Assembly (NCBI GenBank): GCA_965644495.1
Contig: CBFFSA010000001.1
Coordinates: 434,001-497,891, forward strand
Origin: Perkinsela sp. CCAP 1560/9
Taxonomy: Eukaryota > Protista > Euglenozoa: Kinetoplastea
Direction of reading: 5' to 3'
Length of the DNA: 63,891 bases
Numbering within the stretch: position 1 is the first letter of the stretch; every line of letters begins with the position of its first letter. The notes under the pieces are model-generated. The model was not told the DNA's origin. It saw nothing but the letters and a program-made list of their open reading frames with translations, and searched no databases. The position numbers and the translations under genes are program-made. This document shows positions 3,726 through 40,865 of the stretch, piece by piece.

Positions 3726-4019
3726 TGTCTACTATGCAAACAAAGATAGCCTTATGAAAACTATGTATTCTTGACTAAAACTCGTTGGTATCATGTTTAG
3801 TTCGTATTTGGGCGTTATATATCAATTCAAACTTTTGCATGTAGAAGAAATAAAAAAGATATCATGCCTGTCTAAGGGATTTCGAATCTGAAAGGGGAAT
3901 ATTTCTTCAAAAGAAATTCTATACATATGTATGATCATTCAGCCCATTCAAAGTCAGGAATCAGCTCAACACAAAGAATTTAGTTCAGAATTCCTAAGGA
4001 ACATAGGAATACGTTCACA

Positions 4020-4940
4020 CTACTCGCTTTCTTCGTCTGATTCGTCCTGATCACGTTGGTTTGTAGTCGGAGAGGCGATGTCGTCTTCCTCCATAACTTG
4101 CGGCGGTGATCGCACGACACATTCGCCACCCTTCTCTTCCATACCCTCAGTGATCAGATCGACAGCCTTCTGTACTAATGCAATGCCTTCCGCTTTATCC
4201 ATCATCTGAGTCCGGACAGTATAGTGCGGTGCTGCAACAACATGAACCTTTATTGTGCTATCTTGGTCGATCTCCAACATTTCAGCCTTCGCAAATACTT
4301 CTTTGATACCTCGAATCCCTTCGGGAGTGTATAATGTTACCTCAACTTCGGCACGGATACGAAAGGCGGAGGCTTTCATACGGTGCTTGACCTCCTCCAT
4401 TAGACTTCGAAATATAGGCTCTGACTCAACAGTGAGTCCAATGACCGAAATTACTTTTTCAGGACTGCTTAGTGCAACTTTAAACCCATCATATGCATGA
4501 CCATAGCGACTGTACAAGGGCCATCCCACAACTTTATAAAGTTCTTCGGTGGAGTACTTCGGATTTCGCTGTACAGTAGACTGCAAAATGCCATGGACCA
4601 TTTTGGCGCGAGTGTAGCGTTCCTCACATTGCCTCATGTCAGACTCACTGACCCTTTTCTTTGATAGATCTACATAACCGCGAGCCTTGTCGACACGAAT
4701 TACGGTCATAACTTCCACTGATCCAACCTTGATGTGTTTCGAAATAGAACGGATTCGACGACGTGAGAGTTCGGTAAAAGGAACCATTCCCTCTAGGTGA
4801 TCGTACTCTATGAGCCACACGTACGCTGCAGAGTCCCCGACCGACTTGACCTTTACCATGACGAGGTCATCTAAATCTGGCACCGCCTTTTCGTAAAAGC
4901 GAAAGGAGGAGAAATTAGTCTTTCGCACCGGTTCAGTCAT
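4020..4940 (-). CDS. eIF2A: Translation initiation factor eIF2 alpha
   Basis: S1 domain with EGMVPFTELSRRRIRSI and VIRVDKARGYVDLSKKRV. Confidence 0.96.
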   Translation of the reverse strand: MTEPVRKTNFSSFRFYEKAVPDLDDLVMVKVKSVGDSAAYVWLIEYDHLEGMVPFTELSRRRIRSISKHIKVGSVEVMTVIRVDKARGYVDLSKKRVSESDMRQCEERYTRAKMVHGILQSTVQRNPKYSTEELYKVVGWPLYSRYGHAYDGFKVALSSPEKVISVIGLTVESEPIFRSLMEEVKHRMKASAFRIRAEVEVTLYTPEGIRGIKEVFAKAEMLEIDQDSTIKVHVVAAPHYTVRTQMMDKAEGIALVQKAVDLITEGMEEKGGECVVRSPPQVMEEDDIASPTTNQRDQDESDEESE

Positions 4941-5188
4941 AAAGATTAAGGAAATAAAGGGTGTGGTAGAAAACGAATCTCACTGTAGACATAAAAAAGG
5001 CATCAAAAAATTGGGTACGTGGCACATGATTCGTTGAAATATCAATGCAACCCACAAATCCTAATCACATCGCACATAAAAAAATCAAGAAGCTGAAGCC
5101 GCGCGAAAGTGGTGCCCCCCATTTCTTTTAGAATTCAATGTGCCCCCGAAAATACGTTTTTCTGAATGTACAACACGAGTTGTACGGT

Positions 5189-7236: not shown

Positions 7237-8277
7237 CTAAAGTGAATCGCTTAGCTCCGGGAGCGGCTGATCGGAAACCTCACCGCATTTTGATGAGGCA
7301 TATTTCCGTTTCACCGCGGTGTACTTGCTGCTCAGCAACACGTGGGCGTACTCCAATAACTGCTGGGCGACACTAAAGACATCGGGTAGAGTGTATCCCG
7401 AGTAGTGTTGCATCAGAGGAGTCCATGGCTCCGTGTGGCCCCGCGTACGACATGCGAGATACACACAGGCGGCAGCCACTAGACTCGGCAGATATCCGTA
7501 CATCGCGTAGCTCAGTAGGGATATCTCCGAGTAGTAAAAGGTGGCATGTGTCAATGAAGTGTCGGCGTCCATCACGTCTAACAGACGGCTTGTGAAGTGC
7601 ATTACATTCGGAGTTGTCAGTCGGAAGTGAAGCGCTCCACAAATAAGTCGTTCCATAGTGAGAATATCTTCTCGGGAGTACGTGTTGGCGCTAATGTACA
7701 CACAGTCTTTAATTTCAGGTGGCCATATTTCCTCATATTTAGCCGCGAGCAGTATCGCGGTAACACCCACGAGCTGAAGTGTAGATCGAGTGGTGCGTGC
7801 GACGGAGAGGTATCGGTCAACAATATCGACGGCAAGGAAGAGTGTCTCGGGCCGACACTTGAACTTCAGGTGTACCTCGACAAGCCAGTCAACAAGAATG
7901 GTTCGCATTTTTTCGCTCAATTCAGGTTGATGACTCAAGTAGGGGTCGCGCGAAAGTTGTTCCTCGGCGTGTCTCAGACTTGACATGATATCTTTCATAT
8001 ACTCTGCGGCGTACTGGGGATCAGCGTGTCGTCGCTTGTCGGCCTGTGGGGAGGCAGAGAGGTACGGCTGTGACTGTTCTACGGATTGGGTTAGAATCTT
8101 TTCTTTTTGAAGAAAAAGGGAAGGACAAGACTTGATTGCTTGACTGAGAACTGGAATCACATTGATATCTGCTTTAGCTAAAGGCATCGTACGTTGGGAT
8201 AATCCTTTGGATGGCTGAGAATTTTGGGAGAGTGCAACTTCTTGCTGGGAAAGAGAAAGCGCTGCTTCGCGGGGCAT
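7237..8277 (-). CDS. Mitotic-type (A/B-like) cyclin, copy 1
   Basis: Cyclin box MRTILVDWLVEVH and LQLVGVTAILLAAKYEEIWPP. Confidence 0.95.
   Translation of the reverse strand: MPREAALSLSQQEVALSQNSQPSKGLSQRTMPLAKADINVIPVLSQAIKSCPSLFLQKEKILTQSVEQSQPYLSASPQADKRRHADPQYAAEYMKDIMSSLRHAEEQLSRDPYLSHQPELSEKMRTILVDWLVEVHLKFKCRPETLFLAVDIVDRYLSVARTTRSTLQLVGVTAILLAAKYEEIWPPEIKDCVYISANTYSREDILTMERLICGALHFRLTTPNVMHFTSRLLDVMDADTSLTHATFYYSEISLLSYAMYGYLPSLVAAACVYLACRTRGHTEPWTPLMQHYSGYTLPDVFSVAQQLLEYAHVLLSSKYTAVKRKYASSKCGEVSDQPLPELSDSL
7301..8058. repeat. ~760-bp direct repeat (cyclin core), second copy at 10795-11552
   Basis: Near-identical DNA. I found only two substitutions by eye (aattcaggttg vs aactccggttg), both synonymous. 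Confidence 0.95.
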
Positions 8278-8814
8278 AAGCAGATATAGAAAATAATAAA
8301 ATAAGCCTGTTTGTGTGATAGTAGTATAAGGTTTCGAAACAGTCGGTAAATTTTACCGACTTCATAGCTTTTACTAAAAGCTATATAAAAAAATCTATAT
8401 GCTAAAAACTCGTGCTATATTTGTAGTGGCATCTGAAGAAAGAAACTCTGAACGATGTCAAGCCCAGCACATGTATACAGGGGTACCAGTATGCGTAACG
8501 CGGAACTAATACAGATGAAAAAGCAAAACTCTGACAATTGTGGAATTATAACGTTTTGTACTGGTATTATTCGTCTTTTACCAGTACTACAGTCCAATAC
8601 TACAGTCCACAGTGTACTATCTCTCATTAATACCAATGAAGGTCAGAAAAAAGAAGAAACCTCAACTTTCCATTCATGCAGGCGGGAAAGTCAATGCGAT
8701 GAACCAAAGTCAATAAAGATCATTACTTGGTGGTATCATTACTTAATATCTTTTCTTAGTGGTGCACGGACGACTTCTCCAATATAGTGTGGAACAAAGC
8801 GAAAATGAAGATTT

Positions 8815-10356
<1,542 letters not shown>

Positions 10357-10733
10357 TCACACAACATATTTAACGTGTTATTAAATAGACTGAGTTACTT
10401 ACGTGTACTACAAGAAATATTTCTGAAGCACATGACTTACATCGGCGAGTGCCTAATAAAGTTTACAACAGGCGGAGGAACATTACATTCAACAGAAATC
10501 GGAATTCCAGAAGACTAAAGAATCTGGCGCTACGAAACCAAAAACCCTTTTGGTTCCTTCTCATTGGTTTTTGGAATAGGGAGTCACACACCTCGTGGTA
10601 ACACTTACTACTACAAGGAACAATGGCTTACTGCTTCTAAAATCTAGTTCTACTTTTTAACTAATGAAGTAATTCTACTATAGAATCACCCATACAATAT
10701 GCCAAGGATAAGCTCTACAGACATACAGTGTAG

Positions 10734-11753
10734 CTAAAAATCTTCCCTCTGTGGAAGAGAACAAGATGCCGCATTTGCGTATTTATCCGTATCGTATTTC
10801 CGTTTCACCGCGGTGTACTTGCTGCTCAGCAACACGTGGGCGTACTCCAATAACTGCTGGGCGACACTAAAGACATCGGGTAGAGTGTATCCCGAGTAGT
10901 GTTGCATCAGAGGAGTCCATGGCTCCGTGTGGCCCCGCGTACGACATGCGAGATACACACAGGCGGCAGCCACTAGACTCGGCAGATATCCGTACATCGC
11001 GTAGCTCAGTAGGGATATCTCCGAGTAGTAAAAGGTGGCATGTGTCAATGAAGTGTCGGCGTCCATCACGTCTAACAGACGGCTTGTGAAGTGCATTACA
11101 TTCGGAGTTGTCAGTCGGAAGTGAAGCGCTCCACAAATAAGTCGTTCCATAGTGAGAATATCTTCTCGGGAGTACGTGTTGGCGCTAATGTACACACAGT
11201 CTTTAATTTCAGGTGGCCATATTTCCTCATATTTAGCCGCGAGCAGTATCGCGGTAACACCCACGAGCTGAAGTGTAGATCGAGTGGTGCGTGCGACGGA
11301 GAGGTATCGGTCAACAATATCGACGGCAAGGAAGAGTGTCTCGGGCCGACACTTGAACTTCAGGTGTACCTCGACAAGCCAGTCAACAAGAATGGTTCGC
11401 ATTTTTTCGCTCAACTCCGGTTGATGACTCAAGTAGGGGTCGCGCGAAAGTTGTTCCTCGGCGTGTCTCAGACTTGACATGATATCTTTCATATACTCTG
11501 CGGCGTACTGGGGATCAGCGTGTCGTCGCTTGTCGGCCTGTGGGGAGGCAGAAAGGTATGGGTGAGAAGATGAATTAGGATGAGCTAAGTGATGTTTCTT
11601 TCCAGCTGAATGTAGAGTGGCGTGACTTTTAATTGCATTGACGTTCGCGCTCGTTAGCGCCCCGGTACTCTGAGATACTATTTTTGGGTACTGGATTGTA
11701 AGGACATCGAATAGGGATTGTGCCTGTGTATGGGGTGTCGACTGAGGTATCAT
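10734..11753 (-). CDS. Mitotic-type (A/B-like) cyclin, copy 2
   Basis: Same cyclin core as 7237-8277 with different N- and C-termini. Confidence 0.95.
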   Translation of the reverse strand: MIPQSTPHTQAQSLFDVLTIQYPKIVSQSTGALTSANVNAIKSHATLHSAGKKHHLAHPNSSSHPYLSASPQADKRRHADPQYAAEYMKDIMSSLRHAEEQLSRDPYLSHQPELSEKMRTILVDWLVEVHLKFKCRPETLFLAVDIVDRYLSVARTTRSTLQLVGVTAILLAAKYEEIWPPEIKDCVYISANTYSREDILTMERLICGALHFRLTTPNVMHFTSRLLDVMDADTSLTHATFYYSEISLLSYAMYGYLPSLVAAACVYLACRTRGHTEPWTPLMQHYSGYTLPDVFSVAQQLLEYAHVLLSSKYTAVKRKYDTDKYANAASCSLPQREDF

Positions 11754-13002: not shown

Positions 13003-13542
13003 TCAAAGTTTGTCCTCCCCTCGAAGATATTCCCCAACGTCTGCCTCATGAAAGAGAACAATGGCGTTGCTTTCGCACTTTCTGCACTGCAACGTGCTCT
13101 GCGCTGTGACCCCGAAGCCTAATGGGAGGTCAGACATAGAAAACACAACGACCCCCGCGTGTTGAGGGGTATTTTCCGTTATGCGACCCAATCCATTTCT
13201 CGTTATATTATTTCCGTACAAGAAAGATTGTTCTTGGTTTGGTTTCACCCATACTTTAAAAATAGCGTATTTCGCCAAAATATCCAGGGCTGTAATTATG
13301 ATACGAATGTTTCCATGATGTGTTACCCTAGCGAGAGCGGTTCCGATCCCCACAAGATGTTTGCGGTGAACCTGGCTGGCGACTTTTTCTAGTGCTGTTG
13401 GAATAAGCCAGATGCGCTTAGCATGAATGCGGAAAACCCACTCTTCACCACCTTGATCCAGTAAACGACTCATATTCGACCCAATATATTTCGCAAGTTT
13501 CGCAAAGAGCTTCTCGGACTCTTCTTTTGTTAAGGGGCGCAT
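13003..13542 (-). CDS. NIP7: 60S ribosome biogenesis protein NIP7
   Basis: MRPLTKEE..LAKYIG N-terminus and C-terminal PUA domain ending ADVGEYLR. Confidence 0.95.
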   Translation of the reverse strand: MRPLTKEESEKLFAKLAKYIGSNMSRLLDQGGEEWVFRIHAKRIWLIPTALEKVASQVHRKHLVGIGTALARVTHHGNIRIIITALDILAKYAIFKVWVKPNQEQSFLYGNNITRNGLGRITENTPQHAGVVVFSMSDLPLGFGVTAQSTLQCRKCESNAIVLFHEADVGEYLRGEDKL

Positions 13543-13723
13543 GGAAGATGATAAGAAAGTTGAAAATCAGAGAAACATTGAAAAAGGAAAACCGCTGCTC
13601 CTTACCAATTACGGCAGATAAATACACATCTATAAAATATCTAGATCTATCCATAAGTATCTAGAAAATATATTTTTAGGAGGGTGCACATTAATCCAAC
13701 CAATCTCACAGATTGCTTGGTCT

Positions 13724-15019
13724 TCACCTGCGCTCGTTAACAAATTCAAATGTTTCTCCACCAAGGAAGAAATGTGTCCGACTTTGTCTGAGAGCCGCAT
13801 AAGTTCCGTGTGCTCCCTCCAGCTGTATTAATCGTGTAGGCAATCCCATGACGCAGAGCATGTTACAATGAGAAATCCAGCACATACGTGGGGGTTTGAT
13901 AAAAGGCCCACATGTATGTAATACAAGGGAGGTAAGCTTAGATAAAGCAGGTATACGCAAAATTTGAACAACAAGTGAGTTTTCTGTTGTACCGTAAAGA
14001 ACTGCTAAACAAGGGTGTCCCTTTAGTGTGATACGACATATTGCGTAGGCGGTCTGCATGAGATGGTTAAAGAATGCTCCCTCGGGAAGCAAACCGCTAC
14101 TGGAAAAGACCTGACATGAAGTATCATAAGCAAGAGCAAAAATATATTTTCCTTCCGACGATGCCTCCATGCATGTTATTGGTGCCCCAGGGGAGGTGCA
14201 AGTGATGGTATGCTGCAAAACCATTCGATCGCGTTCCACTGCTAGAAGCAGCAGGTCTCCATTTTCCACGCCAAGTGCGATGTGCCCGATATCAAAATTT
14301 GTGTCGGAGAAAAGCGGGGTACTTGCGTTCGATCCCACCCACTGAATACAGCTAATTCTATTTGAGAATGTGAAGCCCCATTCGAGAAACTTACTGTACG
14401 TATCCGTTCGGATAACGACAATGCGACGTCCGCATTCGTCCACTGCCCAGATCCACTCCCCAGAAGAAGAAAATTGTGCATCACTCACGGAGGAAAAAGA
14501 TAAACCTGTGATAGAACATACGTCAGATATTTGAGTTGTTGCCTCGCCTAAAGAATAATCTTCACTAATATTCCAAAAAAATACTCCGGTGTCAGAAAAA
14601 GTTAAGAACAGATGAGCTAGCAGTGGATGAGTTCGAATACCACGTAAAAGATAGTCAAACACAGATACGGCCCCAGATTCGTATGTATTAATAACTTTTT
14701 GAAGTTTGAGGCACACCTCTTGAACGACACCAGAGTAAAGAAGCACCAGCACGCGTCCTGATGGGGGACTATCGACCTTTTGATTCTCCTTATCACAAAT
14801 TTGTTTGTGTCCATCGTGCGGTCCTGTGATGAGTGCCGCATCGACAATTTTATCGTCTACTGAAATTTGCCATTGCTTCAGAATCGGCTCAACAATATAT
14901 GCAACGTGTTTATTGCCTGGTAAGGTTTTTAATGTGCTCGTACTTTGATTGGGACCACACAACGATAAATAACACGACAGAGCATCAAGACCCTTGTCTT
15001 TGTATTCAGTACTTACCAT
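13724..15019 (-). CDS. Hypothetical beta-propeller (WD40-like) protein
   Basis: 431-aa ORF with degenerate propeller blades (ITCMEASSEGKYIFA). Confidence 0.6.
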   Translation of the reverse strand: MVSTEYKDKGLDALSCYLSLCGPNQSTSTLKTLPGNKHVAYIVEPILKQWQISVDDKIVDAALITGPHDGHKQICDKENQKVDSPPSGRVLVLLYSGVVQEVCLKLQKVINTYESGAVSVFDYLLRGIRTHPLLAHLFLTFSDTGVFFWNISEDYSLGEATTQISDVCSITGLSFSSVSDAQFSSSGEWIWAVDECGRRIVVIRTDTYSKFLEWGFTFSNRISCIQWVGSNASTPLFSDTNFDIGHIALGVENGDLLLLAVERDRMVLQHTITCTSPGAPITCMEASSEGKYIFALAYDTSCQVFSSSGLLPEGAFFNHLMQTAYAICRITLKGHPCLAVLYGTTENSLVVQILRIPALSKLTSLVLHTCGPFIKPPRMCWISHCNMLCVMGLPTRLIQLEGAHGTYAALRQSRTHFFLGGETFEFVNERR

Positions 15020-15324
15020 TTAAAAAAGATCTATGAAAAAATAATAGAGTTGTACAGAATTCGTAGCCCCAGTTGTAATGTACATACAACGCACGTTGTG
15101 CCGTGATGTATAAAGCAAAGAAAATGTAATGTAACATGTCCACTATTCTACAGTTTAAACTTCTATTTAAACAGTTGCATGGGGCCGATGACACATATAA
15201 ATATGGTTGGATTTCCAAAATGTCGGGAGAGAAAATAAGTACATTCTCTCTCAATGTCATGAAATGCTTGTGCCTGCGAGGAATGATAAGCTCGTAACAA
15301 GCAGAAATTCTGCACTCAAGATTT

Positions 15325-16029
15325 TCATCGTCTCTTCCCTTTATTTTTCTTAACATCGCCCTTCGATAGCACAGTAAACCCTTGTGGTATTGCGTTAGAA
15401 ACCTCTCGTTTTTGCGATTGAAAAGTTTTCAAAAATTCTTCTCGACATCTTTCTTCCTCCAACCGTTCTTTTTCACGTTCTGACTCTTTTTTTCTTTCTT
15501 CTTCATCGGCTACCCTCTTTAGCTCAGCCAATCGTTCAAGTTCTTCCATGTCAAATTCTACGATTTCTTCGGTTACCTCACATGTTACTGGAGTTTGAGT
15601 GGAAGAAATTATTGCGTTTTGCCTTTTAGCACCTGTTTCAGATGTATCGTCTTCGGAATCATCAAAACTATCTGCGCCTTCACTTGTATTCAGTATGCCT
15701 CTACGTTTCTGCTTGTTCGCCGCCTGTGCAAGTGCTTCTCGGAGCCTTTGCAAATAAGATTCCTGTGTACAGTCAACGACTTTGAGTAAATTGTCGATTT
15801 CATTGGGGTCCTCTACAAGCCCTAAAATCTCTCTCGTGAACGCCGCAATGCGACTGGGATCTATTTTCCTCTTTTCCAACACGTTCCTGCTCTCATCAGC
15901 ATTATATGATAAAGTGGAAGCAGTCTGCAATACTTTTTGCCCCACAGCTTTTCCAAATTCCACCGCTTTGCTGTAGGTGCTCAGATCGTAAAGCTCCAAG
16001 GGTACAGAACTACTCTGTGAGTTATGCAT
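15325..16029 (-). CDS. Hypothetical protein with charged coiled-coil C-terminus
   Basis: 234-aa ATG ORF on the coding strand. Confidence 0.65.
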   Translation of the reverse strand: MHNSQSSSVPLELYDLSTYSKAVEFGKAVGQKVLQTASTLSYNADESRNVLEKRKIDPSRIAAFTREILGLVEDPNEIDNLLKVVDCTQESYLQRLREALAQAANKQKRRGILNTSEGADSFDDSEDDTSETGAKRQNAIISSTQTPVTCEVTEEIVEFDMEELERLAELKRVADEEERKKESEREKERLEEERCREEFLKTFQSQKREVSNAIPQGFTVLSKGDVKKNKGKRR

Positions 16030-20067: not shown

Positions 20068-20303
20068 GTCCTCGCGCGAAAGGGCTTAACTAGGTGAAGT
20101 AGCGAAAGAGAAAACGTTTCTTTTAGATATAAAATGAAAGGTGGCACAAAACTTTTAAAGGAAAACACTTGAACATTTCTTGACAAGGCTGCTATACCCT
20201 CGAGCGTCAGAGCTCTCGAGAATTTTAGAAACATGAGATTCTTAAGTGTATCAGACATAAAAAACATACTAGTACAGTATATTAGTTTCGTACTAATACA
20301 TTA

Positions 20304-20613
20304 CCGTATACCCCCCCCCCCCCAAGTAAGAGAGATTTGGCCCTTTTTGGGCTGACCCCCAGTAAGAGAGATTTGGCTTGGGAGCCCAACAGGAGGCGTA
20401 TAGGGGGTAGGGGGTTGGTGTCTGCATGTTGGGGGCCTCGGGGGTAACCCAAAGAAGCGTTTTAACACGTTTTCAGAAGCAAAAAATAGAAAAAAATAGT
20501 CAAAAAAGTTGGGAGAAAAGAGGAAACTGGCCAGAAAAGCATACCCCCCCCAATAAGAGAGATTTGGCCATTTCGACCCAAAACCCATTCTCTTACTGGG
20601 GGGGGGTATACGG
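20304..20613. mobile_element. MITE family A (Tc1/mariner-pogo type), 310 bp
   Basis: TIRs CCGTATA-C(n)-AGTAAGAGA / TCTCTTACT-G(n)-TATACGG, TA on both flanks, and internal repeats of AGTAAGAGAGATTTGG. Confidence 0.9.
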
Positions 20614-20645
20614 TAGTACAGAATGCTGTCGCTCAAGATGTGAAA

Positions 20646-22133
20646 TCAAAAAGTTGAAGACTGCACCCCAGTTTTGAATTTGCTTAAAAAAGGATTTTCT
20701 TCTTGTCGCTTATGTCTCCGCACAAGCATTCGGTGCGTTCGTGATTTCATGTGCGCTTCCACCTGAGAAGGCCCTCTCAATGACTTTTGACACACATCAC
20801 ACCAAGTTGTGACGCATTGCTTTTGTTCGAAAGCTCTACCCGGAAGGATCTTATGGCGATATTCATGGGTAAGAATGTCCGGCAAGGGCAAAGAGGATAA
20901 AGCAAAGGCTTGTTTTGGAGTCAAAATTAGATTTCTATGATTAAAAGCGGAGGCGCCACGCTCATTAATAACTCTAAAAAGGTTTACATAAGGGTGCGTG
21001 GCGAATCGATGACGTATCCACTGCTGTTGCTTCTTCGCATATTTTCGTGTAGCCCTATATAAATCTTCTGTACACGATTGCCATATTTCGCACGCATTTA
21101 TATTCGCTGATGGTATATCAAATTCTGTTTCTATGTCCAAGCATTTCAACCGGAGAAACGGAAGAAATTCTTTAAAACCAATGGCTTCAAGCAACGGAAA
21201 TCGACTTCCTGAGTTTAATGCTCTTCTATTCAAAACGTGATCTTTCAATAAAGGATGATTTTTTAAAAGAAGAAAATAGTCTTCCACTTCACGCTGTAGT
21301 CCGCGAGTTTCCATGAAATTAATTCTTTCCCTAATGACATTGTCCATATGTTCATCACCGTCAAAATCACACCAAAATGTTACATGGTTCATCCATCGTA
21401 TTGGATCATGCTCGCTTTGCTCAATAATATGGTCGCTATGTTTTACCTTCCCTCGAGATAGATAGAAGACCTCCAAGCTCCGCCGAATACGTCTCGTATC
21501 TTTCGGGTGCCATCGAATTGCCATATTAGAATCTACGTGGGATAATTCTTCGTGTAGCGATTTCGCCGAAAGTGCATCAAGTATGCGGAACAATGAACGT
21601 CTGTAATATGTGTCAGGCATTTCAGCATTGTTTTGAAGCAACTCCTGTAAAGTAGAGTAATTTTTTAATGTCATGTAAGTCCCTTGTTCGGTACTTGCTG
21701 AAAGAGAGTCTAATGAAGAAAATGAGCTCACTGCTGTAGATTCAATTATGGACTCACACATGAGAGCCTGTACGTAGTAGTTGGTACCGCCACATACAAT
21801 CGGGGTCTTACCATCGTTCAGCAAGTTTCGGATGAGTGGGAGAGCTTTGTTGACAAAGCTATGAACGCTGACTTCGTAAGTTAGATCCACTTCAGAGGTA
21901 TTGATTGCACCGTTCTGAATAGAGTTTAAAAAATGATGATGCACCTTTTGCAACTCAGCCTCAGTAGGTTTGTTGGATGCAATGGGTAGTCCCGGACACA
22001 TTTGCATTACATCGGCACATATTATCTCGCAAGGACGATCAAAAGTGGAGAAAACATGCTGAGCCAATCGCATGGAGAAGTTCGACTTACCTGAGCCTGT
22101 CGATCCTATTACGAAGAATACTCTAGAGTCCAT
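20646..22133 (-). CDS. MOD5: tRNA dimethylallyl (isopentenyl) transferase with C-terminal zinc finger
   Basis: GSTGSGKS, ADVMQ, CGGTNYY, ATRKYAKKQ and a CDVC..HMKSRTH zinc finger. Confidence 0.93.
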   Translation of the reverse strand: MDSRVFFVIGSTGSGKSNFSMRLAQHVFSTFDRPCEIICADVMQMCPGLPIASNKPTEAELQKVHHHFLNSIQNGAINTSEVDLTYEVSVHSFVNKALPLIRNLLNDGKTPIVCGGTNYYVQALMCESIIESTAVSSFSSLDSLSASTEQGTYMTLKNYSTLQELLQNNAEMPDTYYRRSLFRILDALSAKSLHEELSHVDSNMAIRWHPKDTRRIRRSLEVFYLSRGKVKHSDHIIEQSEHDPIRWMNHVTFWCDFDGDEHMDNVIRERINFMETRGLQREVEDYFLLLKNHPLLKDHVLNRRALNSGSRFPLLEAIGFKEFLPFLRLKCLDIETEFDIPSANINACEIWQSCTEDLYRATRKYAKKQQQWIRHRFATHPYVNLFRVINERGASAFNHRNLILTPKQAFALSSLPLPDILTHEYRHKILPGRAFEQKQCVTTWCDVCQKSLRGPSQVEAHMKSRTHRMLVRRHKRQEENPFLSKFKTGVQSSTF

Positions 22134-22617
22134 TCGAGTCGAACATTAGTGACCAAGAAAATCGTAAAAATTCGCGTTGCATGAAGCTAATGTCCAGGAA
22201 AACGAAAATAGATCAACGCATCGGTATTCATTCAATAGGTATGATTACGGGCGTGAAGTGATTACGGCCATTCTTTGGTAAAAAGGATTACTCATACGTG
22301 CGTACCAAGTCCAAAATTCAACACTAAATAGGGGGGGGGTAGAGCACTCAATAGTAAATAGGGGAGACAGTAAATAAAAAAAAATTATTTATATTAAGAC
22401 ACGATTAAGACAGGAGTCATGTTAACACATGACTTCAATATTCAATAATATGCTCTACAAGATTTGAACACCTAAGGGGGGATCTATGAGTAGTAAAAGA
22501 TTACTCCCTGGATTATCATATCCAGTGCACCAAAAACGCGAAAATTACATCCCGTTCCAGGTGTCAAACATTTTCTCATATCCAGTGCACCAAGAATAAT
22601 AATAAAAAATGAACCTA

Positions 22618-22986
22618 AACCCTGTTCCGGGTTATTGTGCCCCCCCTGCACAATAACTGGCTCTAGGCACAATATCTGGCTCCAGGCACAATAATTAAAT
22701 ATTAGAAAAAACCAAAAAAAGGGTAAAAAAAAATTGGCGCCGCTTCACGGCGCCTTTTTTACGGACAAACATGTTCATATGCAGAAATAGTTCTATTTAA
22801 CGAGTGCGTTGTTGAACCAACAACGTTAATTCCGAGAAAATGAGAATAAAAAACCCGCAAAAAAAGTGAGGCACCGCTTCGCGGCGCCATATCTTGGAGG
22901 GGGGTACAATAATAGTGGTCGTTTCCACTTATTGTGCCCCCCCTGCACAATAACTGGCTCTAGGCACAATATCCCGGAACAGGGTT
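22618..22986. mobile_element. MITE family B nested in the IS30 element, inserted at a C-TA-G site
   Basis: TIR AACCCTGTTCCGGG(T/A)TATTGTGCC, TA at 22616-17 and 22987-88, and an internal ~45-bp direct repeat (22632-22676 / 22929-22973). Confidence 0.88.
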
Positions 22987-22988
22987 TA

Positions 22989-23756
22989 GTACGATGATAC
23001 AATGATTGGTATATTTTTCAATGGTTTGCCCGTTGGGCCGTTTGTTCAACTTCTTGGTTGTCTTGTTCACCTCTTTGAGGCTCAGTGTCTCAAACGACTC
23101 ACTCGCCTTGTGATATTGGCGAATGTTGGTAAGACCATTTGAATTTTCCACCGCCCCCTTTTCCCACGAGTGATACGGGGCACAGAAAATGGATTTACAG
23201 CCCAGCTTTTCATTCACTCTTTCATGCTTTGTACATTCCGTTCCATTGTCATAAGTGATAGTAAAAGTTTTGTACTTTCTTAATCCCTTGATGATTTGAT
23301 TCGCCACTTCTTTGGCATGCTTCGATCGCAGAACACGCAGAACGAGGAATCGGCTCTTCCGCTCACACAAAGTCAAAATGTAGCCTGAGTGATTATGACC
23401 TTCCACGAGGTCTGCTTCTCAATCCCCATACCGACGCCTCTTGCGTCCCGACAACTAAAGTGTTGGCAACCTGTTCTGGACTGTGAAGCTGCCCTAAGCG
23501 CTTCTTGATGTGGCGCTCCACGGGCCCAGAGATCATGCGAGGGCGCACGGGCTTTCTTTCCAAGCGTCTCTTGGATACTCTGAGCACGGCTGGCCTCGTA
23601 CCGCCGACCCCGTTTTTCGTTTCGGGCCAGCTCACGGCTAACGGTGCTATGTGATTTTCCGATAGCCGTGCCGATCTCACGTCGCGTGGCTCCCGCCTCG
23701 AACATCTCTTGTATTGTGCGTCTCTCTCCTTCGCTGAGCCGCTTATACTTTGTCAT
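22989..23756 (-). pseudogene. IS30-family DDE transposase pseudogene
   Basis: HTH (YKRLSEGERRTI..IGKSHSTVSRELARN), HSPEQVAN, GD*EADLV (D), TLCERKSRF, ITYDNGTE (D) and APYHSWEKGAVENSNG (E). There are frameshifts, an internal deletion and an in-frame TGA at 23419-23421. Confidence 0.92.
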
Positions 23757-24109
23757 GACGAAAGAAGGAAAAAAATCGAGTAATAGAAATGCCTAAATTG
23801 AATAAGTAAGTTGGATATGTAAATTGAAATTGTAAAAATATACTTTTGGTGCACTGGATATGATAATCTAAAAACTTTTGGTGAACTGGATATGATAACT
23901 TGGTGCACTGGACATGATAATCCACCCTTTAAACGGAAAACAAGGCGCAAACGTGAAATAATATCAAATAAGAATAGAGGTAACCTCACATAAACCTCAG
24001 GTTTATGTGTACGTGCTTCGGAGTTGTCAAAGAAGAAACCTTTCGGCAACCTTTCGCATTTTAGTTGTTTATGCCTTAAAAACGGACTGGTTACAAACAT
24101 CGCTGACAT

Positions 24110-25525
24110 TTACTTGAAAACGGTATCACCAGCCGCACACAGTTTGTCGTGCATGATGCTATGACGTATCGCCACACCATTGGTTCGAAGTTTGTGATGA
24201 CGTGATGTACGAAAATAAAAAATAATTTTTTCTGCAAAACGTTTTTTTAACATTTGTGCGTCGTTATAGCGTGTGTCTTGCGCAGGTATGTCTGATAACG
24301 CAGATATAATATCATAAGTCGCGTGAGGAGGGACGCAAATATATTTAACGTTTGGATTATCTCCCCGAGGTCTCGGCCCGGAGGAGTCGGGTAGTATGGT
24401 ATTACTTTCTGTACATTCTCTTATTTCGTAGTCGTAAGGAGGTGACAGAACCAATTGAGTACCAATTTCGTTTCCCAAGGAGAACTTCTTTGAGTTATCC
24501 TCAAAAAAAGGTATAAACAAGGGTGGATCGTCATCGTCAAGATTCTGATGATATGGATATTCAGGGTTGGCCCTTATATCTTGAAACAAATCCTTTGAAA
24601 CAAGTAATTGAAGAAGAGCTTTGAAAATTGAAGGAGCCCATTCGGTGCGAAGCACTGAGACATCGGAAGGGTCTTCATCAGGAAGCATTTCTCTTGATTC
24701 ATATCGCTCTATGTGTTGTCGCGCAATATCCTGTGCACATGCATGTACCATATTATCGTATGAGATAAGCCCCTCCCATGGACAGAAAGTTTCAAAAGCA
24801 ACGATGTAAGGGCAGATACCGTTGAATAGCATTGGTACTTCAATATGAGCTAAGCAACATGCATCAAAGTAAATAGCATTTAGGTGGGGTAGAGGACCAA
24901 GTGCGCGCAGAGTATCGGCAATATCACGGATGCTCAGAGCGTGACTCACATCATGTACACCCTCATCCATAAAAAGATGTAAACCTTTGGCATGAGAACT
25001 AAAGTAAAGTGCTGTTAACGATGACGCATCACCCACACACTCTTTGATAAACCATTGAAAAGTGGAAAGATGACCCATAGGTCCCGGGATATCCACTTTT
25101 CTGTGCGAGGTATGCACATCCACAAGATCACAAAAGCTTGAGTCTTCGGAGCATGCAGAATTATCAAACGTGTGAGGAAAATCGGATGATATTTTTTCAG
25201 CATTTGTCAGCTCTAATTTCGACTCAGAAGCGATAGGCAAAACCTCTTCTTCATTTCCCCGTATTTCAAGACAAGAAGCTTTGCCTTTGTGCGAAACAAG
25301 AACGACATATCGATCCTGTGGAGAAAGAATTCGCTGTTGTTGGTTGTTTAGTCGTACACCTTGTGACACAATTTTGTGCTTAATATCGTATATGACGTGC
25401 GATAAAGGAAAGTCACCTGCTCCGTAGTAGAAAGCTGCTGTGCGAACACTCTCACTGTTTCTGTCAGTTTGCTTGAAGTCAGTCATATGCAAATAGTAAG
25501 AATAAGATAAAACATAGATTATCAT
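24110..25525 (-). CDS. Clostripain-family (C11, clan CD) cysteine peptidase
   Basis: ALYFSSHAKG (catalytic His) and IYFDACCLAHIEV (catalytic Cys) match the C11 pattern. The start may be the second Met (MTDFK). Confidence 0.75.
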   Translation of the reverse strand: MIIYVLSYSYYLHMTDFKQTDRNSESVRTAAFYYGAGDFPLSHVIYDIKHKIVSQGVRLNNQQQRILSPQDRYVVLVSHKGKASCLEIRGNEEEVLPIASESKLELTNAEKISSDFPHTFDNSACSEDSSFCDLVDVHTSHRKVDIPGPMGHLSTFQWFIKECVGDASSLTALYFSSHAKGLHLFMDEGVHDVSHALSIRDIADTLRALGPLPHLNAIYFDACCLAHIEVPMLFNGICPYIVAFETFCPWEGLISYDNMVHACAQDIARQHIERYESREMLPDEDPSDVSVLRTEWAPSIFKALLQLLVSKDLFQDIRANPEYPYHQNLDDDDPPLFIPFFEDNSKKFSLGNEIGTQLVLSPPYDYEIRECTESNTILPDSSGPRPRGDNPNVKYICVPPHATYDIISALSDIPAQDTRYNDAQMLKKRFAEKIIFYFRTSRHHKLRTNGVAIRHSIMHDKLCAAGDTVFK

Positions 25526-27182: not shown

Positions 27183-30100
27183 CTATACTTGTGCAAAATA
27201 CCAAGGTGTTTGCTCGATATCGTTATATGAAAAAGGAATGAGCAAAGACATGACTTGATTACAGTTATCAAGCTTGTTTCGAATGCTCGGGTACATGCAA
27301 CTTGCTAAAGAAAAATACGTATGATACGCCCTTCCTGCATAGTGAAAAGTGTGTTCCTTGTCACCTATCTTTTCAACGAGATCTGCAAGTAAAATGTGTT
27401 CATCACAAGAAAAGACAAAATCGTTCAAATCTTCTAGTGTTAGGATCCACACCTCATAGTATCGTATACCGGGAATAAAATTGATGTGAGAGAGATTTTG
27501 AAAGTTAGGTGCTACGAAATTTAACAAACTTAAATTCAGAACGGGCTTTCGCAAAGAATTGTGCCTAACCAGAGATTTCGAAAAACCCGTCGTTTCATAA
27601 CTAGGAGATGATATGCCTTCTTTAGCGCCACCTGTCTCATCTATCCAAAGGGCAAGCCTACCCAAGGTTACTGCGGCCTTTTCTATTTCTATGAAATCAT
27701 GCGAATTCTTTGTAGAAAGGGGGAACGATTCCATAAGCACGAGGCTAATACCGTCTAGAACAGTATGTCCCTCAGATACTATGTGACTGATGGGTACAGA
27801 AAAGTTCAAAACATCCCACTCCGATGACAAATAGTCAGCACAAGAGACGGATTTAGACGCAATCGTACTCGGAAGATGAACTTCACACTCCCGTAAATCC
27901 TTGTGATTATGAAATCTCGCGTCCTCTGCGAAAGGAAAAAGCAATTCGGTTACGCAACTTTCATCCGGAATACGCGTTTCGTCTGCTTGTACCAGTGTTG
28001 CGCAATCAGTACGCACAACCAACGAAAGAGCGCAATTAGACGCTAAAGTTGTTGGTTTATGAAAAACGACCTCAACAGTAAGATTACCACTTTCACTACT
28101 GTTACATTTACAGTTTTTCAAATTTACGCAACATCCAAACATTGTTGTCTTTGCTAATCTTGGGGAATCCGATTCTGAAAAAGTACAACTGATATCGTTA
28201 TAGTGCAATTTACCCTCCCAACTGCACCCCCCATGAAAAGCTCGATTCATGCAGGGTTGTGACTCTATGTATGGTGCCCCCTTTTCCGAATTTTTTTTGT
28301 CTTCACCTATAGGGCACAACTCTTGCTGTGAAAGATGCTGCCATGGGAGTGCCTCAGCTACAGGACTGCCGAAACGACAAGTCTGGATACCGAATCCTGC
28401 GTTGAAATTTGTAGAAAACGGAAGACTTGTGATACAAGGCGTTACATGTGTAGGAAACAAAGTGGACCACAATAAATTGTCGCGAGAAATAAACCCGGTT
28501 CCCTGTGAACTTCCATCACAGTTGATTTGCATCCCCGAACTCGTTTCCCACGTCCAACCGGGGGCAAAAAGTGCCGACGAAAGGGATCTAGTATCGGTCA
28601 CCGCGCGATAAGACTCTGCGACGAGTTCAATTGAGGGCTTCTGACGAGGGGAGTTGCGACAAAATATGTCAATACCCACGTAAACTTTATGGGATAGTTC
28701 TCCCGCCATTTTTATACTGTGTTGCAAGTGAGCTTCCGTCCAGTGATAATCAGTAAAAATGCCATCACAAAGCTCAAAGAATGAACTATTCAGTGAACTA
28801 AGACAGGATTGCCATTGTAATTTGCCTTGCACTGTGACACTGTCGTACCAAAAAACATGACTTGCGGGATGCAAACTATGCATAGTTGCGGTTAATAGGG
28901 AAAGAAAATGCAGGAGATGCTCTACACCTCTAGGAGAAACAGGATTTTCTATGTTCACCAGCCATCCGTCGAAGTTGTAATACATCGCAATATTAGCCAA
29001 TTGACTTGCAACATGAGCAACGTTTGCTTCGCTATTCAAGAAATTTGAGCACTCATCAACCCCTTCTGACCACTCGGTTATGAAAGTTCCCAAGACAGGA
29101 ACTGAATTACTGTGAGCCACATCGATCCACACAGCGGGGGGAATTGTAACGCGATGATGGGAAAAATAGACAAACGTATCAATGCATTGCCAATGACGAA
29201 ATAAGTAGCCGGGAAAAGGATTTTCTGTAGATAAGGTGATGTCCTTACCCTGAGGATAACGGTCGGATTCTAAGTAGCCACCACGACAATCGTGACACAA
29301 GAAAGTGCGACTCGAAGCAAGAACTCTCTCCTGTGAATGAGTGGAACATTTTAAGGTCCTCTGGGTGGAAAGCAATAATTTGACGTGCGACTTGGCAATA
29401 ACTGAAGGAGGAATCCAATCCATGAGCTCTTTCATAGTATCGATTCCACTGCTCATAGAAAGTTTTAAGATGTTTATCGAAGATTTTGATATCAGGGCTT
29501 CATTCAATTTCAAACGTGCTTTCACTGGACCTCCGACAGCCATGTCAAAAGTGCTTTCTGGTAAAGTTCTTTCTGATACATCATTTTTGGCGTCCACGTT
29601 TACGGTGCCACTGACAGAAATCATCAAGGCTTCTTCTAGTTCTTCTTGAATTATTTCTTCCGAGACTGCGGAAATAAGCATTGGGATTGACACCGTACCT
29701 TCAAGTTTCGTAAACCGAAGTGAACAAGAGGTATTTTCGTTATTTGGTCCATTCGTAAAGCCAACCAAAAGCAAAGCTTCGACAATCTCGTTCTGTACGT
29801 GCGTCCACTCCTTACCAATTTGCAGAACACCGTAATTTATATCTTGAAATTCCTCCAAAAAACCTTCTAGTGACCGCCAAACTGACATTGCAATTATGAA
29901 GCCATGCGACCCAGGTGACGCTTGTAAAATTTGCTTGACTTTGGATATGAACATGTTTGCGTCGTATACTATTGGTGAAATTCCCTCTTTCAATACACTA
30001 TTGCAGTCATGTGTATCTTCAGCAACTTTAATGTTACCTATTGCAGAGGTTGTAGACGAGTTCGAAGCACTGGCCGAGTCGAAAAAGGCTCGGACCCATG

Positions 30101-30500
30101 GCGTGGAAAGAACAATATTCATCATTTCACGGACACATGCTGGAAGACTTTGTACGCCAAGATAAGAAGTAGCTTCCTCAGTGTAGTGGTTACAATTATT
30201 CTCCAGGAGGTGATATTTTGTTTTGTGAAATCGTGACATTGTGTGACACGGTACGTAAACGTTCCATTCGTCTACAGATCGAGTAGTAATGCCCAAACTT
30301 TGGATTCGAAGCGGTTTTCCGAATCGAGTCTTTCCAGCAGGGCCTTGCACAATCCCCTCGTGCGCATCAAAATAGCATTCAATACCCCCAAGAACAATGG
30401 ATGTGTGCCAGATCGCATCCAAGTGATGCCCAATCAGGGACTGGCTAAGCAACGCGGCGGTGCCACGAGATAAATCGTACATGTATAACAGCACCTCCAT
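27183..30500 (-). CDS. Fusion protein: PPPDE/DeSI peptidase + PUB-like + UIM + GH85 endo-beta-N-acetylglucosaminidase
   Basis: LYMYDLS..IWHTSIV..YHLLENNCNHY (PPPDE), EELEEALMIS (UIM), and CHDCRGGY, IDTFVYFSHHRVTIPP, FDGWLVNIE, WYDSVTVQGKLQWQ (GH85). Confidence 0.88.
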   Translation of the reverse strand: MEVLLYMYDLSRGTAALLSQSLIGHHLDAIWHTSIVLGGIECYFDAHEGIVQGPAGKTRFGKPLRIQSLGITTRSVDEWNVYVPCHTMSRFHKTKYHLLENNCNHYTEEATSYLGVQSLPACVREMMNIVLSTPWVRAFFDSASASNSSTTSAIGNIKVAEDTHDCNSVLKEGISPIVYDANMFISKVKQILQASPGSHGFIIAMSVWRSLEGFLEEFQDINYGVLQIGKEWTHVQNEIVEALLLVGFTNGPNNENTSCSLRFTKLEGTVSIPMLISAVSEEIIQEELEEALMISVSGTVNVDAKNDVSERTLPESTFDMAVGGPVKARLKLNEALISKSSINILKLSMSSGIDTMKELMDWIPPSVIAKSHVKLLLSTQRTLKCSTHSQERVLASSRTFLCHDCRGGYLESDRYPQGKDITLSTENPFPGYLFRHWQCIDTFVYFSHHRVTIPPAVWIDVAHSNSVPVLGTFITEWSEGVDECSNFLNSEANVAHVASQLANIAMYYNFDGWLVNIENPVSPRGVEHLLHFLSLLTATMHSLHPASHVFWYDSVTVQGKLQWQSCLSSLNSSFFELCDGIFTDYHWTEAHLQHSIKMAGELSHKVYVGIDIFCRNSPRQKPSIELVAESYRAVTDTRSLSSALFAPGWTWETSSGMQINCDGSSQGTGFISRDNLLWSTLFPTHVTPCITSLPFSTNFNAGFGIQTCRFGSPVAEALPWQHLSQQELCPIGEDKKNSEKGAPYIESQPCMNRAFHGGCSWEGKLHYNDISCTFSESDSPRLAKTTMFGCCVNLKNCKCNSSESGNLTVEVVFHKPTTLASNCALSLVVRTDCATLVQADETRIPDESCVTELLFPFAEDARFHNHKDLRECEVHLPSTIASKSVSCADYLSSEWDVLNFSVPISHIVSEGHTVLDGISLVLMESFPLSTKNSHDFIEIEKAAVTLGRLALWIDETGGAKEGISSPSYETTGFSKSLVRHNSLRKPVLNLSLLNFVAPNFQNLSHINFIPGIRYYEVWILTLEDLNDFVFSCDEHILLADLVEKIGDKEHTFHYAGRAYHTYFSLASCMYPSIRNKLDNCNQVMSLLIPFSYNDIEQTPWYFAQV

Positions 30501-35139: not shown

Positions 35140-36132
35140 TCACATCTTTTTATCCTTTTCCGCAGCGACAAGAGCCGATATTGTTGGATAATACGAAACT
35201 ATCCAATCCAATCGAGAACTTGAAGTCTCAGAAGAATCCAAAGTACCAGAATCCTTGGTCGAATCAGAAGCTAACCCTAGTCTTTCGTTTCGCATATTTC
35301 TCACCAACTTTACATATGCCTGCTTAATTTTATTTATTGACTGCCATTTGATTTCATGAATTTCACCAATGCATTGTGGATAAAAGAGTGCGATAGTCGA
35401 TGAGTCCCAGGGCCCCACACCACCGAATAAGACAACAGGCGCCCGTCCCTGTCTACTGCTGCGTCGAACGAGAGGTGACTTTGAAAGAAATCCCGACACG
35501 TCAGATCCAATCTCCTCCTTCGCCTCACGTAAGGCACATAAGTACTCTGTCTCCCCCGCTGCCCTCTTTCCCTTCGGAAACACCCAAGGAGAGGACGCAT
35601 GGGCGCATACGGTAAGAACATGAGTTTTGCTACGGTCCAGCAGAACAACTCCACATACCGTGATGGATTGGTTGTATTTCAAAAATTGAGATAATCCGTA
35701 CGTTATGTGATCCGTCGATATCGTGGGCAACAATCCCAAAAGAGAGCGAGCGAAATACGGGAATGGAACCTGTGAGTGTAATGTTTCTACACTTGTACTA
35801 CCTAACTGCGGAGGACACGATTTCTGAAGAGTTACCGATGTTTCGCCTGCACTAACATCAACTTCGCTTGAAGCTTCGTTGAAAGCGTCAGCGCTGCCAT
35901 CACAGTAATAATAATATGCTTCCTGCACGTGGTAGAGCAAGCGTGGCCAAGAAGAACGATCTTCCACGGGTACGTTCAACACGAACCGCACAAGCAAACT
36001 CAATAGAATGTTGTTTGAAATCTCATTTAAACCACTCACCCCTAGGTAGTCCGTGTCATGCTTGAAGTACACAGGTTTCTGCGATCCATACCCAGGTAAG
36101 CTCATTTCATAACAGCTGATCAAAAACCACAA
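35140..36132 (-). CDS. DCP2: mRNA decapping enzyme DCP2 (Box A + Nudix)
   Basis: Box A LLVRFVLNVP..RLLYHVQEAYYYYCD and Nudix WVFPKGK..ETEYLCALREAKEEIG. Confidence 0.85.
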   Translation of the reverse strand: MWFLISCYEMSLPGYGSQKPVYFKHDTDYLGVSGLNEISNNILLSLLVRFVLNVPVEDRSSWPRLLYHVQEAYYYYCDGSADAFNEASSEVDVSAGETSVTLQKSCPPQLGSTSVETLHSQVPFPYFARSLLGLLPTISTDHITYGLSQFLKYNQSITVCGVVLLDRSKTHVLTVCAHASSPWVFPKGKRAAGETEYLCALREAKEEIGSDVSGFLSKSPLVRRSSRQGRAPVVLFGGVGPWDSSTIALFYPQCIGEIHEIKWQSINKIKQAYVKLVRNMRNERLGLASDSTKDSGTLDSSETSSSRLDWIVSYYPTISALVAAEKDKKM

Positions 36133-39992: not shown

Positions 39993-40161
39993 GACATAAA
40001 ACCAACAACATGCAAATACAAAAACAGTAAATTATTACTCAAAAATTATTTTACAAGATGAAACACATTATGCTTACTTATAATTTACAAGGTACAAAAG
40101 CAACCTGCGAAACTGTGAGTAATGCCACAGACTATACTAAAGCTTTACTTGAGGGGAATTA

Positions 40162-40825
40162 CCGTATACCCCCCCAGTAAGAGAATGGGTTTTGGGTCAA
40201 AATGGCCAAATCTCTCTTACTAGGGGGGTATACCTTTTTGGCCAGTTTTGTCCTTTCTTCCTTCCTTTTTAGACATTTTTTTCGGTGAAAGGGGACTTTT
40301 TCCCCCCGAAAAAAAAACTTAAATTCTTTCATGGTGGTTTCTCAAAAAAAATTTCAGTATTATCCAAGCGAGTGATTAAACATCGTATTTTTGCTACTTA
40401 CACGACTCCGCTCTATCATTTTTCTGTGCACAGGCTGTAAAATGTATGACAGTACCACTTTTTGTAGTTGGGAACCTTGGATGACGTGATGATAGAAGCC
40501 TGTACCGTACGATGTGAATTGAGGAGTTCTTGTAATCCGCTGTTTAAGGAATTTGAAATTATTGTCCAGGCTCAGAACCGGAACCAAGGTAGAGCTCATA
40601 AATTTTCTTTTTTGGTACATTTTATCAAGGGAAGTACGAAGTTAAAAGTTTTTGGGGGAAAAAAGTCCTTTTGACCAATTTTTCTATTTTTGCTTCTGAA
40701 AACGTGATAAAACGCTTATTTGGATTACCCCCGAGCCCCCCGACATGCGGACACTCACCCCCTACCCCCTATACGCTTCCTGCGGGGCCCTCGATCCAAA
40801 TCTCTCTTACTGGGGGGGTATACGG
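40162..40825. mobile_element. MITE family A, longer (664 bp) copy in opposite orientation
   Basis: Same CCGTATA-C(n)-AGTAAGAGA TIRs and TA flanks. Its terminal sequences are homologous to 20304-20613. Confidence 0.9.
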
Positions 40826-40865
40826 TATATTGAGAATGGTAAGAAGAACCCGAGCAGTAGACATA

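Follow-up and report, generated by a model that had tools for sequence, protein, structure and literature searches.

An apparently resident and recently mobile lineage of IS30 transposons in the genome of a prokinetoplastid

The nuclear genome of a prokinetoplastid very probably houses a diversified and recently mobile lineage of IS30 transposons, one member of which is a broken copy in the stretch of DNA analysed here. This stretch, hereafter the window, comprises 63,891 nucleotides of the Perkinsela sp. CCAP 1560/9 assembly GCA_965644495.1 (contig CBFFSA010000001.1, positions 434,001 to 497,891 of the forward strand), and window coordinates count from its first letter. An initial annotation, made from the letters of the window, had proposed that an IS30 lineage is established in a eukaryote. 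The proposal is supported by the many families found, by intact open reading frames (ORFs), by target site duplications (TSDs) that differ from site to site, by the monophyly of the transposases and by a search of the assembly in which no bacterial rpoB or 16S gene was found. In the history that we propose, a prokinetoplastid ancestor would have acquired a bacterial IS30 in its nuclear genome, probably in a single, ancient event. That element would have given rise to a resident DNA transposon lineage, which comprises at least 12 families in two clades (about 40% identity between them), some of the families having moved very recently.

The window copy is a non-autonomous element of clade I, family C, which occupies positions 22507-23926 on the minus strand, its ends being set by comparison with sister copies and with other families. 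It measures 1420 bp with a nested MITE and 1049 bp without it, and is 93-98% identical, piecewise, to three other copies (L002, L003 and L004). The 25-bp inverted repeats of the initial annotation were found at 22509-22533 and 23900-23924, with 24 of 25 positions matching. Its TG...CA ends and CCC target duplication, on the other hand, are mis-registered, the true ends lying 2 bp further out (5'-GG). The left terminal inverted repeat, on the 5' side of the transposase, spans 23900-23926 on the minus strand and opens 5'-GGTGGATT; the right one spans 22507-22533 on the plus strand and opens 5'-CCTGGATT, with a terminal dinucleotide unlike that of the left end. CCC is not a true TSD because two of its three C residues at each side are the element's own. 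The duplication instead reads CTC on the right side (22504-22506) and CTT on the left (23927-23929), both on the plus strand, with two of three positions matching. In this corrected register the insertion site obeys a purine-NNN-pyrimidine target rule, which it does not in the TG...CA register.

The same register holds elsewhere in the genome. With ends at 5'-GG, a perfect 3-bp TSD is present in 13 of 17 two-ended copies, drawn from six families, and all of these TSDs are different; the TG...CA/CCC register yields a perfect TSD in two of the 17, and any other register in none to two. A purine precedes and a pyrimidine follows the TSD in 25 of 26 half-sites (p=4e-7). Seven family-A copies have 1424 bp in common and diverge exactly outside the left 5'-GG and the right GG-3', each carrying a different, perfect 3-bp duplication. 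The family-C copy L003 (G000:C1:2978592-2980055) is flanked by AAG and CTT, without a TSD, each half obeying the target rule, and is possibly a recombinant of two insertions. In family B, L034 and L035 start with TG at the left and give 4-bp TSD readings (ACGT and AGTA), and L051 has a GG start and a 3-bp TSD. At L032:2380-2836 the right-end repeat array is present twice, 316 bp apart, with a TSD at the outer array only.

Within the window element lies an IS30 transposase pseudogene (23023-23756, minus strand), delimited by profile matches and by alignment to sister copies. The HTH, SPEQ motif and complete DDE triad previously ascribed to it are all there: HTH_38 is matched at E=4e-15, SPEQ is retained, the fragment scores 116 bits on NCBIfam NF033563 (cut-off 80), and the catalytic D, D and E codons are located at 23410-23412, 23248-23250 and 23146-23148, the second D and the E being separated by 33 residues. 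The same fragment scores 33 bits on the IS481 model. The decay that had been noticed is real but understated, as the ORF is broken five ways: by a 2-bp deletion near 23581 that causes a frameshift, a 179-bp deletion at 23443, a TGA at 23419-23421, at a conserved Trp, a 6-bp insertion near 23125 and a 3' deletion near 23033. As read from its sequence, the window copy is dead. The 6-bp insertion and the 3' deletion are common to L004, which lies at another site with its own TSD, and the deleted subfamily must therefore itself have been mobilised. An intact family-C transposase acting in trans would have mobilised the window copy or its deleted parent, and the MITE would have inserted afterwards.

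The nested MITE (22618-22986, 369 bp) is flanked by TA...TA, a Tc1/mariner-type target, and lies in the 3' non-coding part of the element, outside the ORF; L003 and L004 have the empty TA site. It had been described as host-type, and has many genomic copies, 12 of them two-ended. The family to which it and L008-L022 belong is TA-flanked, with many copies of 310-370 bp, and the genome also contains Tc1-like DDE_3, DDE_1 and DDE_Tnp_4 genes, so several further groups of DNA transposons are present in this kinetoplastid. A second MITE, at window positions 20302-20615, has 18-bp perfect inverted ends and G/C runs, with relatives near 40160-40827.

A search of the assembly for other copies, as the initial annotation had suggested, returned many, with different TSDs and intact ORFs. 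The IS30 HMM has 96 matches in the 21-Mb assembly, 55 of them above the cut-off, scattered over large contigs, and 60 loci of about 3.5 kb each were read. At least 12 copies, from five families, are intact, each having its start codon, the complete ORF and DD(33)E, and there are at least 12 families in total, falling into the two clades. The transposase ORF encodes 315-360 aa, in elements of 1.4-2.5 kb, and intact copies score 227-253 bits on the IS30 model. In L036 the catalytic triad is D174, D228 and E262, and the N-terminal HTH and SPEQ/SPQQ region is likewise found. The predicted structure of the transposase was set aside, since pLDDT is below 50 in the catalytic half. The C-termini of clade II (L031, L032, L044, P0260 and P0262) have an acidic tail with an (L/I)(V/L/Y)DS motif that is absent in clade I.

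Very recent movement is indicated by L036, L037 and L038, copies on three different contigs (C2, C4 and C9) whose ORFs do not differ at all and whose overall identity is 99.6-99.8%. Selection between families is purifying as estimated from the pair E and E2, for which dN/dS is 0.08, dS being saturated for the other family pairs. Internally deleted derivatives are also present: there are family-A end pairs without an ORF and, for clade II, 32 left and 44 right ends, many of them paired 0.6-1.7 kb apart.

The ends of these elements have changed relative to those of bacterial IS30s. A 16-nt end motif, a putative transposase-binding site, occurs three times at the left end of the window element (23847-23916, minus strand; copies at 23901-23916, 23879-23894 and 23847-23862). 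At the right end, motif number two lies at 22577-22592 on the plus strand; the window copy has lost, by deletion, a third one that L003 and L004 retain. Clade I elements carry 3+2 or 3+3 copies of the motif and clade II elements have arrays of up to about 24, whereas in the three bacterial IS30s that were compared, namely that of E. coli and two relatives, no end has more than one. We infer that the repeats provide the transposase with additional binding sites. At the left the elements mostly end in GG, and at the right in CC, GC or TG; the nearest bacterial relatives, which are IS30s of Verrucomicrobiota and of freshwater metagenomes, have GG at both ends. In other respects these relatives are alike, with inverted repeats of about 26 bp, the same GG(T/C)(G/A)GATT opening as at the window left end, a related inner motif and 3-bp TSDs. 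The ends of clade I resemble those of E. coli IS30 and of these nearest relatives, while in clade II the GG start is kept and the motif has diverged.

The leader has changed too. The 90 nucleotides ahead of the transposase in the window element (23757-23846, minus strand) are pyrimidine-rich and lack a Shine-Dalgarno sequence, as in host genes, and form a candidate trans-splicing signal. The pyrimidine fraction in the 40 nt before the ATG is 0.68 in nine elements, compared with 0.64 in host genes and 0.47 in bacterial IS30s; the difference from the latter has p=4e-6, a value computed on related and thus non-independent sequences. These 40 nt are also G-poor, as in host genes, and in L036 no plus-strand sigma-70-like promoter was found. 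Pyrimidine-rich tracts direct trans-splicing in kinetoplastids. Given this role and the host-like leader, expression of the transposase from host polycistronic transcripts, with trans-splicing, is the likely route. The bacterial expression signals would have been replaced by the pyrimidine-rich leader, and the transposase mRNA would be cut from polycistronic transcripts by trans-splicing.

Taken at the level of sequence, the copies demonstrate a single-ORF HTH and DD(33)E transposase between inverted ends, inserting at a loosely palindromic target with a 3-bp duplication; they also demonstrate that copies multiply and that deleted copies spread as well. In E. coli IS30, one end is nicked and joined beside the other, host replication copies out a circle, and the abutted ends then integrate (PMC9333248). 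The lineage described here probably, by a modest preference, still follows this copy-out/paste-in route via a circle, because the layout of the protein is IS30-like and the asymmetry of the ends suits an asymmetric first step. An alternative with the same residence and activity is that the lineage has switched to eukaryote-style cut-and-paste, in which a paired-end complex would make use of the end-motif arrays and excise both strands. Such a switch is distinctly the less probable course. It retains some weight because repeated end motifs, which have expanded in both clades, are common in eukaryotic cut-and-paste elements, and because no abutted end-to-end junction was found, either genome-wide for family A and clade II or in 65 loci. 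Circles are transient, however, and their absence from an assembly is to be expected. Moreover, the IS30 layout and length have been kept, with no new domain in the clade I transposase, and a terminal dinucleotide that is mostly fixed on the left and variable on the right fits an asymmetric first step better than cut-and-paste. No insertion next to the elements' own inverted repeats was seen, and the target bias that was seen is symmetric (the 25 of 26 half-sites given above).

The phylogeny for which the initial annotation had called places the families as a monophyletic group inside bacterial IS30. In an LG+C20 tree of 56 proteins, the 12 families form one clade (98/96) within a bacterial IS30 clade (99/97), and are divided into two subclades (100/99 and 100/100), both with long stems. 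The best matches outside the organism, at 42-49% identity, come from Verrucomicrobiota genomes and environmental contigs, and every checked database match above about 50% comes from the same organism. One candidate from another organism, P0350, turned out to be from the same sample. No closer relative was found in GTDB genomes, JGI metagenomes, plasmids or a 50%-cluster library, none was confirmed among the viral contigs searched, and database searches found no other eukaryote with an IS30 lineage.

Separate entry of clade I and clade II, by two or more transfers from an unsampled donor lineage such as a bacterium in the same host cell, is unlikely. Full-length pairs taken across the two clades are 35-44% identical, a lower value than the 43-49% that each clade reaches with its best bacterial match, and the end motifs of the clades differ; in a 100-sequence quick tree, where the named IS30 references lie further out, they are not joined. 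It is this tree, together with the long stems of both subclades, that keeps a second entry under consideration. Against it, the site-heterogeneous tree joins the clades at 98/96, and in both of them the end motifs are repeated, the right terminus is degenerate and the leaders are host-like. A single, ancient entry is the preferred reading. The composition of the transposase genes (GC 0.45-0.51, GC3 0.42-0.54) is close to that of host genes (0.48 and 0.46), which points to long residence; for six bacterial relatives the corresponding values are 0.51-0.61 and 0.50-0.76.

The neighbours of the window element are eukaryotic, as had been stated at the outset. On one side lies a gene for a tRNA isopentenyltransferase with a C2H2 finger (20646-22133, minus strand) and on the other a clostripain-like (C11) gene, a weak match below the Pfam cut-off (24110-25525, minus strand), with genes for a uL5-family protein, eL33 and a PPPDE-ENGase further around it. 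The ORFs adjoining intact copies are mostly blank in Pfam, so that the eukaryotic context of these copies rests on contig identity and on some annotated neighbours. Four other insertion sites, with ubiquitin, Argonaute, ribosomal-protein and LRR genes as neighbours, were reproduced at 99.7% identity or more in a second long-read metagenome assembly (ENA ERZ24900291). A search of it for an empty allele found all four compared copies at the same sites as in the main assembly; as this second assembly probably derives from the same culture, the agreement is a check on the assembly rather than on the strain. No bacterial 16S was found in the main assembly, its two long SSU matches (about 1870-1890 bases) having scores that we take to be typical of 18S cross-hits. 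Nor was any bacterial rpoB found above the bacterial cut-off; three weak rpoB-like genes are expected from RNA polymerases I-III. That bacterial IS30 sequence was joined into eukaryotic contigs by contamination or chimeric assembly is very improbable, even though the sample or culture contains bacteria and was also assembled as a metagenome, given that each site has a different TSD, that the copies form a ladder of decay with host MITEs nested inside, that GC is host-like with no bacterial 16S or rpoB and no bacterial match above about 50%, and that the same junctions recur in the second assembly. The opposite case raised by the initial annotation, a single copy nearly identical to a bacterial IS within a bacterial fragment, is excluded.

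The host is a prokinetoplastid, as judged from its genes. Nearly all long ORFs of the window are on one strand and lack introns, and the best structure matches found by search for eL33 and dihydrolipoamide dehydrogenase are entries that we presume to be trypanosomatid. The eIF2-alpha protein is nearest to that of Perkinsela sp. CCAP 1560/4 (64%), and its tree groups it with Perkinsela and PhF-6 (100/99) but outside the Perkinsela subclade; gene order is kept in two other metagenome contigs of the same clade. Profile searches, run without a positive control, found no match for paraflagellar-rod proteins or dynein AAA_9, a hint that the organism may lack a flagellum and, like Perkinsela, live as an endosymbiont in an amoeba.

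Several observations on the host were made in passing. The 1041-base JGI contig 3300017035 (L069) is 100% identical to window positions 3943-4983 (eIF2-alpha), which shows that another sample of this organism exists, probably a transcriptome. Two Argonaute-like (PAZ and Piwi) genes, one of them in pieces, adjoin an IS30 copy (L064:237-2983 and 13152-15499), and the host may thus retain RNAi. In the window, a single ORF of 1105 aa (27183-30500) joins a PPPDE peptidase domain to a GH85 ENGase domain, and dihydrolipoamide dehydrogenase lies between two near-identical cyclin genes (7237-11753), where related contigs have one cyclin. A protein with Dcp2 box A and NUDIX is encoded at 35140-36132; trypanosomatids are not known to have Dcp2.

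By their sequence features the elements belong to the IS30 family, and they differ from its bacterial members in host, ends and leader. With E. coli IS30, ISAs2, ISPpu17 and ISApl1 they have in common a single ORF with HTH_38 and DD(33)E, scoring up to 253 bits on NF033563, as well as a palindromic target bias and, as in the family, a TSD of 2-3 bp; identity to E. coli IS30, whose TSD is 2 bp (PMC9333248), is 30-35%. Bacterial IS30s measure 1.05-1.2 kb with one motif per end, whereas these elements are longer, with several to many motifs, and are set apart further by a eukaryotic nucleus, the degenerate right dinucleotide, a pyrimidine-rich leader without Shine-Dalgarno and internally deleted derivatives. 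Compact size and one inverted repeat per end are thus lacking here, a derived trait in features that are typical of the family rather than strictly defining. Transposition of IS30 in zebrafish was reportedly described by Szabo in 2003.

Other bacterial-type elements have become established in eukaryotes. IS481EU and IS3EU/GingerRoot, eukaryotic offshoots of related IS families, are likewise bacterial-type DDE insertion sequences that form multi-family transposons in one protist lineage; the IS family is a different one, however, and in IS481EU the ends are TG..CA and the TSDs measure about 4, 15 or 25 bp (PMC10045372). The elements described here belong to neither, as the IS30 model scores far above the IS481 model and their ends start with GG. 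Merlin, which is related to IS1595 and widespread in eukaryotes, is an IS-related DNA transposon found in the early-branching kinetoplastids Perkinsela sp. and Bodo saltans, but in Perkinsela it lacks both TIRs and TSDs and was considered to have lost its mobility (PMC8101967), whereas the present elements have both ends intact, carry TSDs and include copies that are identical. IS607-like elements provide a further case of transfer from prokaryotes to eukaryotes; their proteins are 42-51% similar to those of bacterial relatives and their distribution is patchy, but they are not DDE elements and number 1-22 sequences per genome (PMC3673617).

The initial annotation knew of no established eukaryotic IS30 lineage, and none was found in the literature searched, subscription journals and Repbase lying outside the search. 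The IS481EU paper, which lists known links between insertion sequences and eukaryotes, does not mention IS30 (PMC10045372), and in a survey of all 24 IS families across some 430 eukaryote genomes Gilbert and Cordaux kept only IS607 (PMC3673617). An unpublished entry, for example in Repbase, is rather improbable. For kinetoplastids, which had been considered to have only retroelements and an inactive Merlin (PMC8101967), the only DNA transposon found in the literature searched was likewise the apparently inactive Merlin. The present lineage would probably merit the status of a new superfamily in eukaryotes. The fuller proposal of an undescribed superfamily, 'IS30EU', which combines nuclear copy-out/paste-in with trans-spliced expression and would be the first among the DNA transposons of kinetoplastids to show signs of current activity, is a tentative one, albeit a serious possibility.

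Insertion sequences almost never establish themselves in eukaryotes, and the known IS-related superfamilies are mostly too old to show the crossing. Here, bacterial relatives are still 42-49% identical and the ends are directly comparable, such that the steps of adaptation, namely a new leader, multiplied end motifs, asymmetric ends and amelioration, can be read and put to the test. If the circle route has been kept, the lineage would offer a naturally occurring case of copy-out/paste-in transposition in a nucleus. Kinetoplastid genetics could also gain a tool from a transposase that is active, small and loose in its choice of target.
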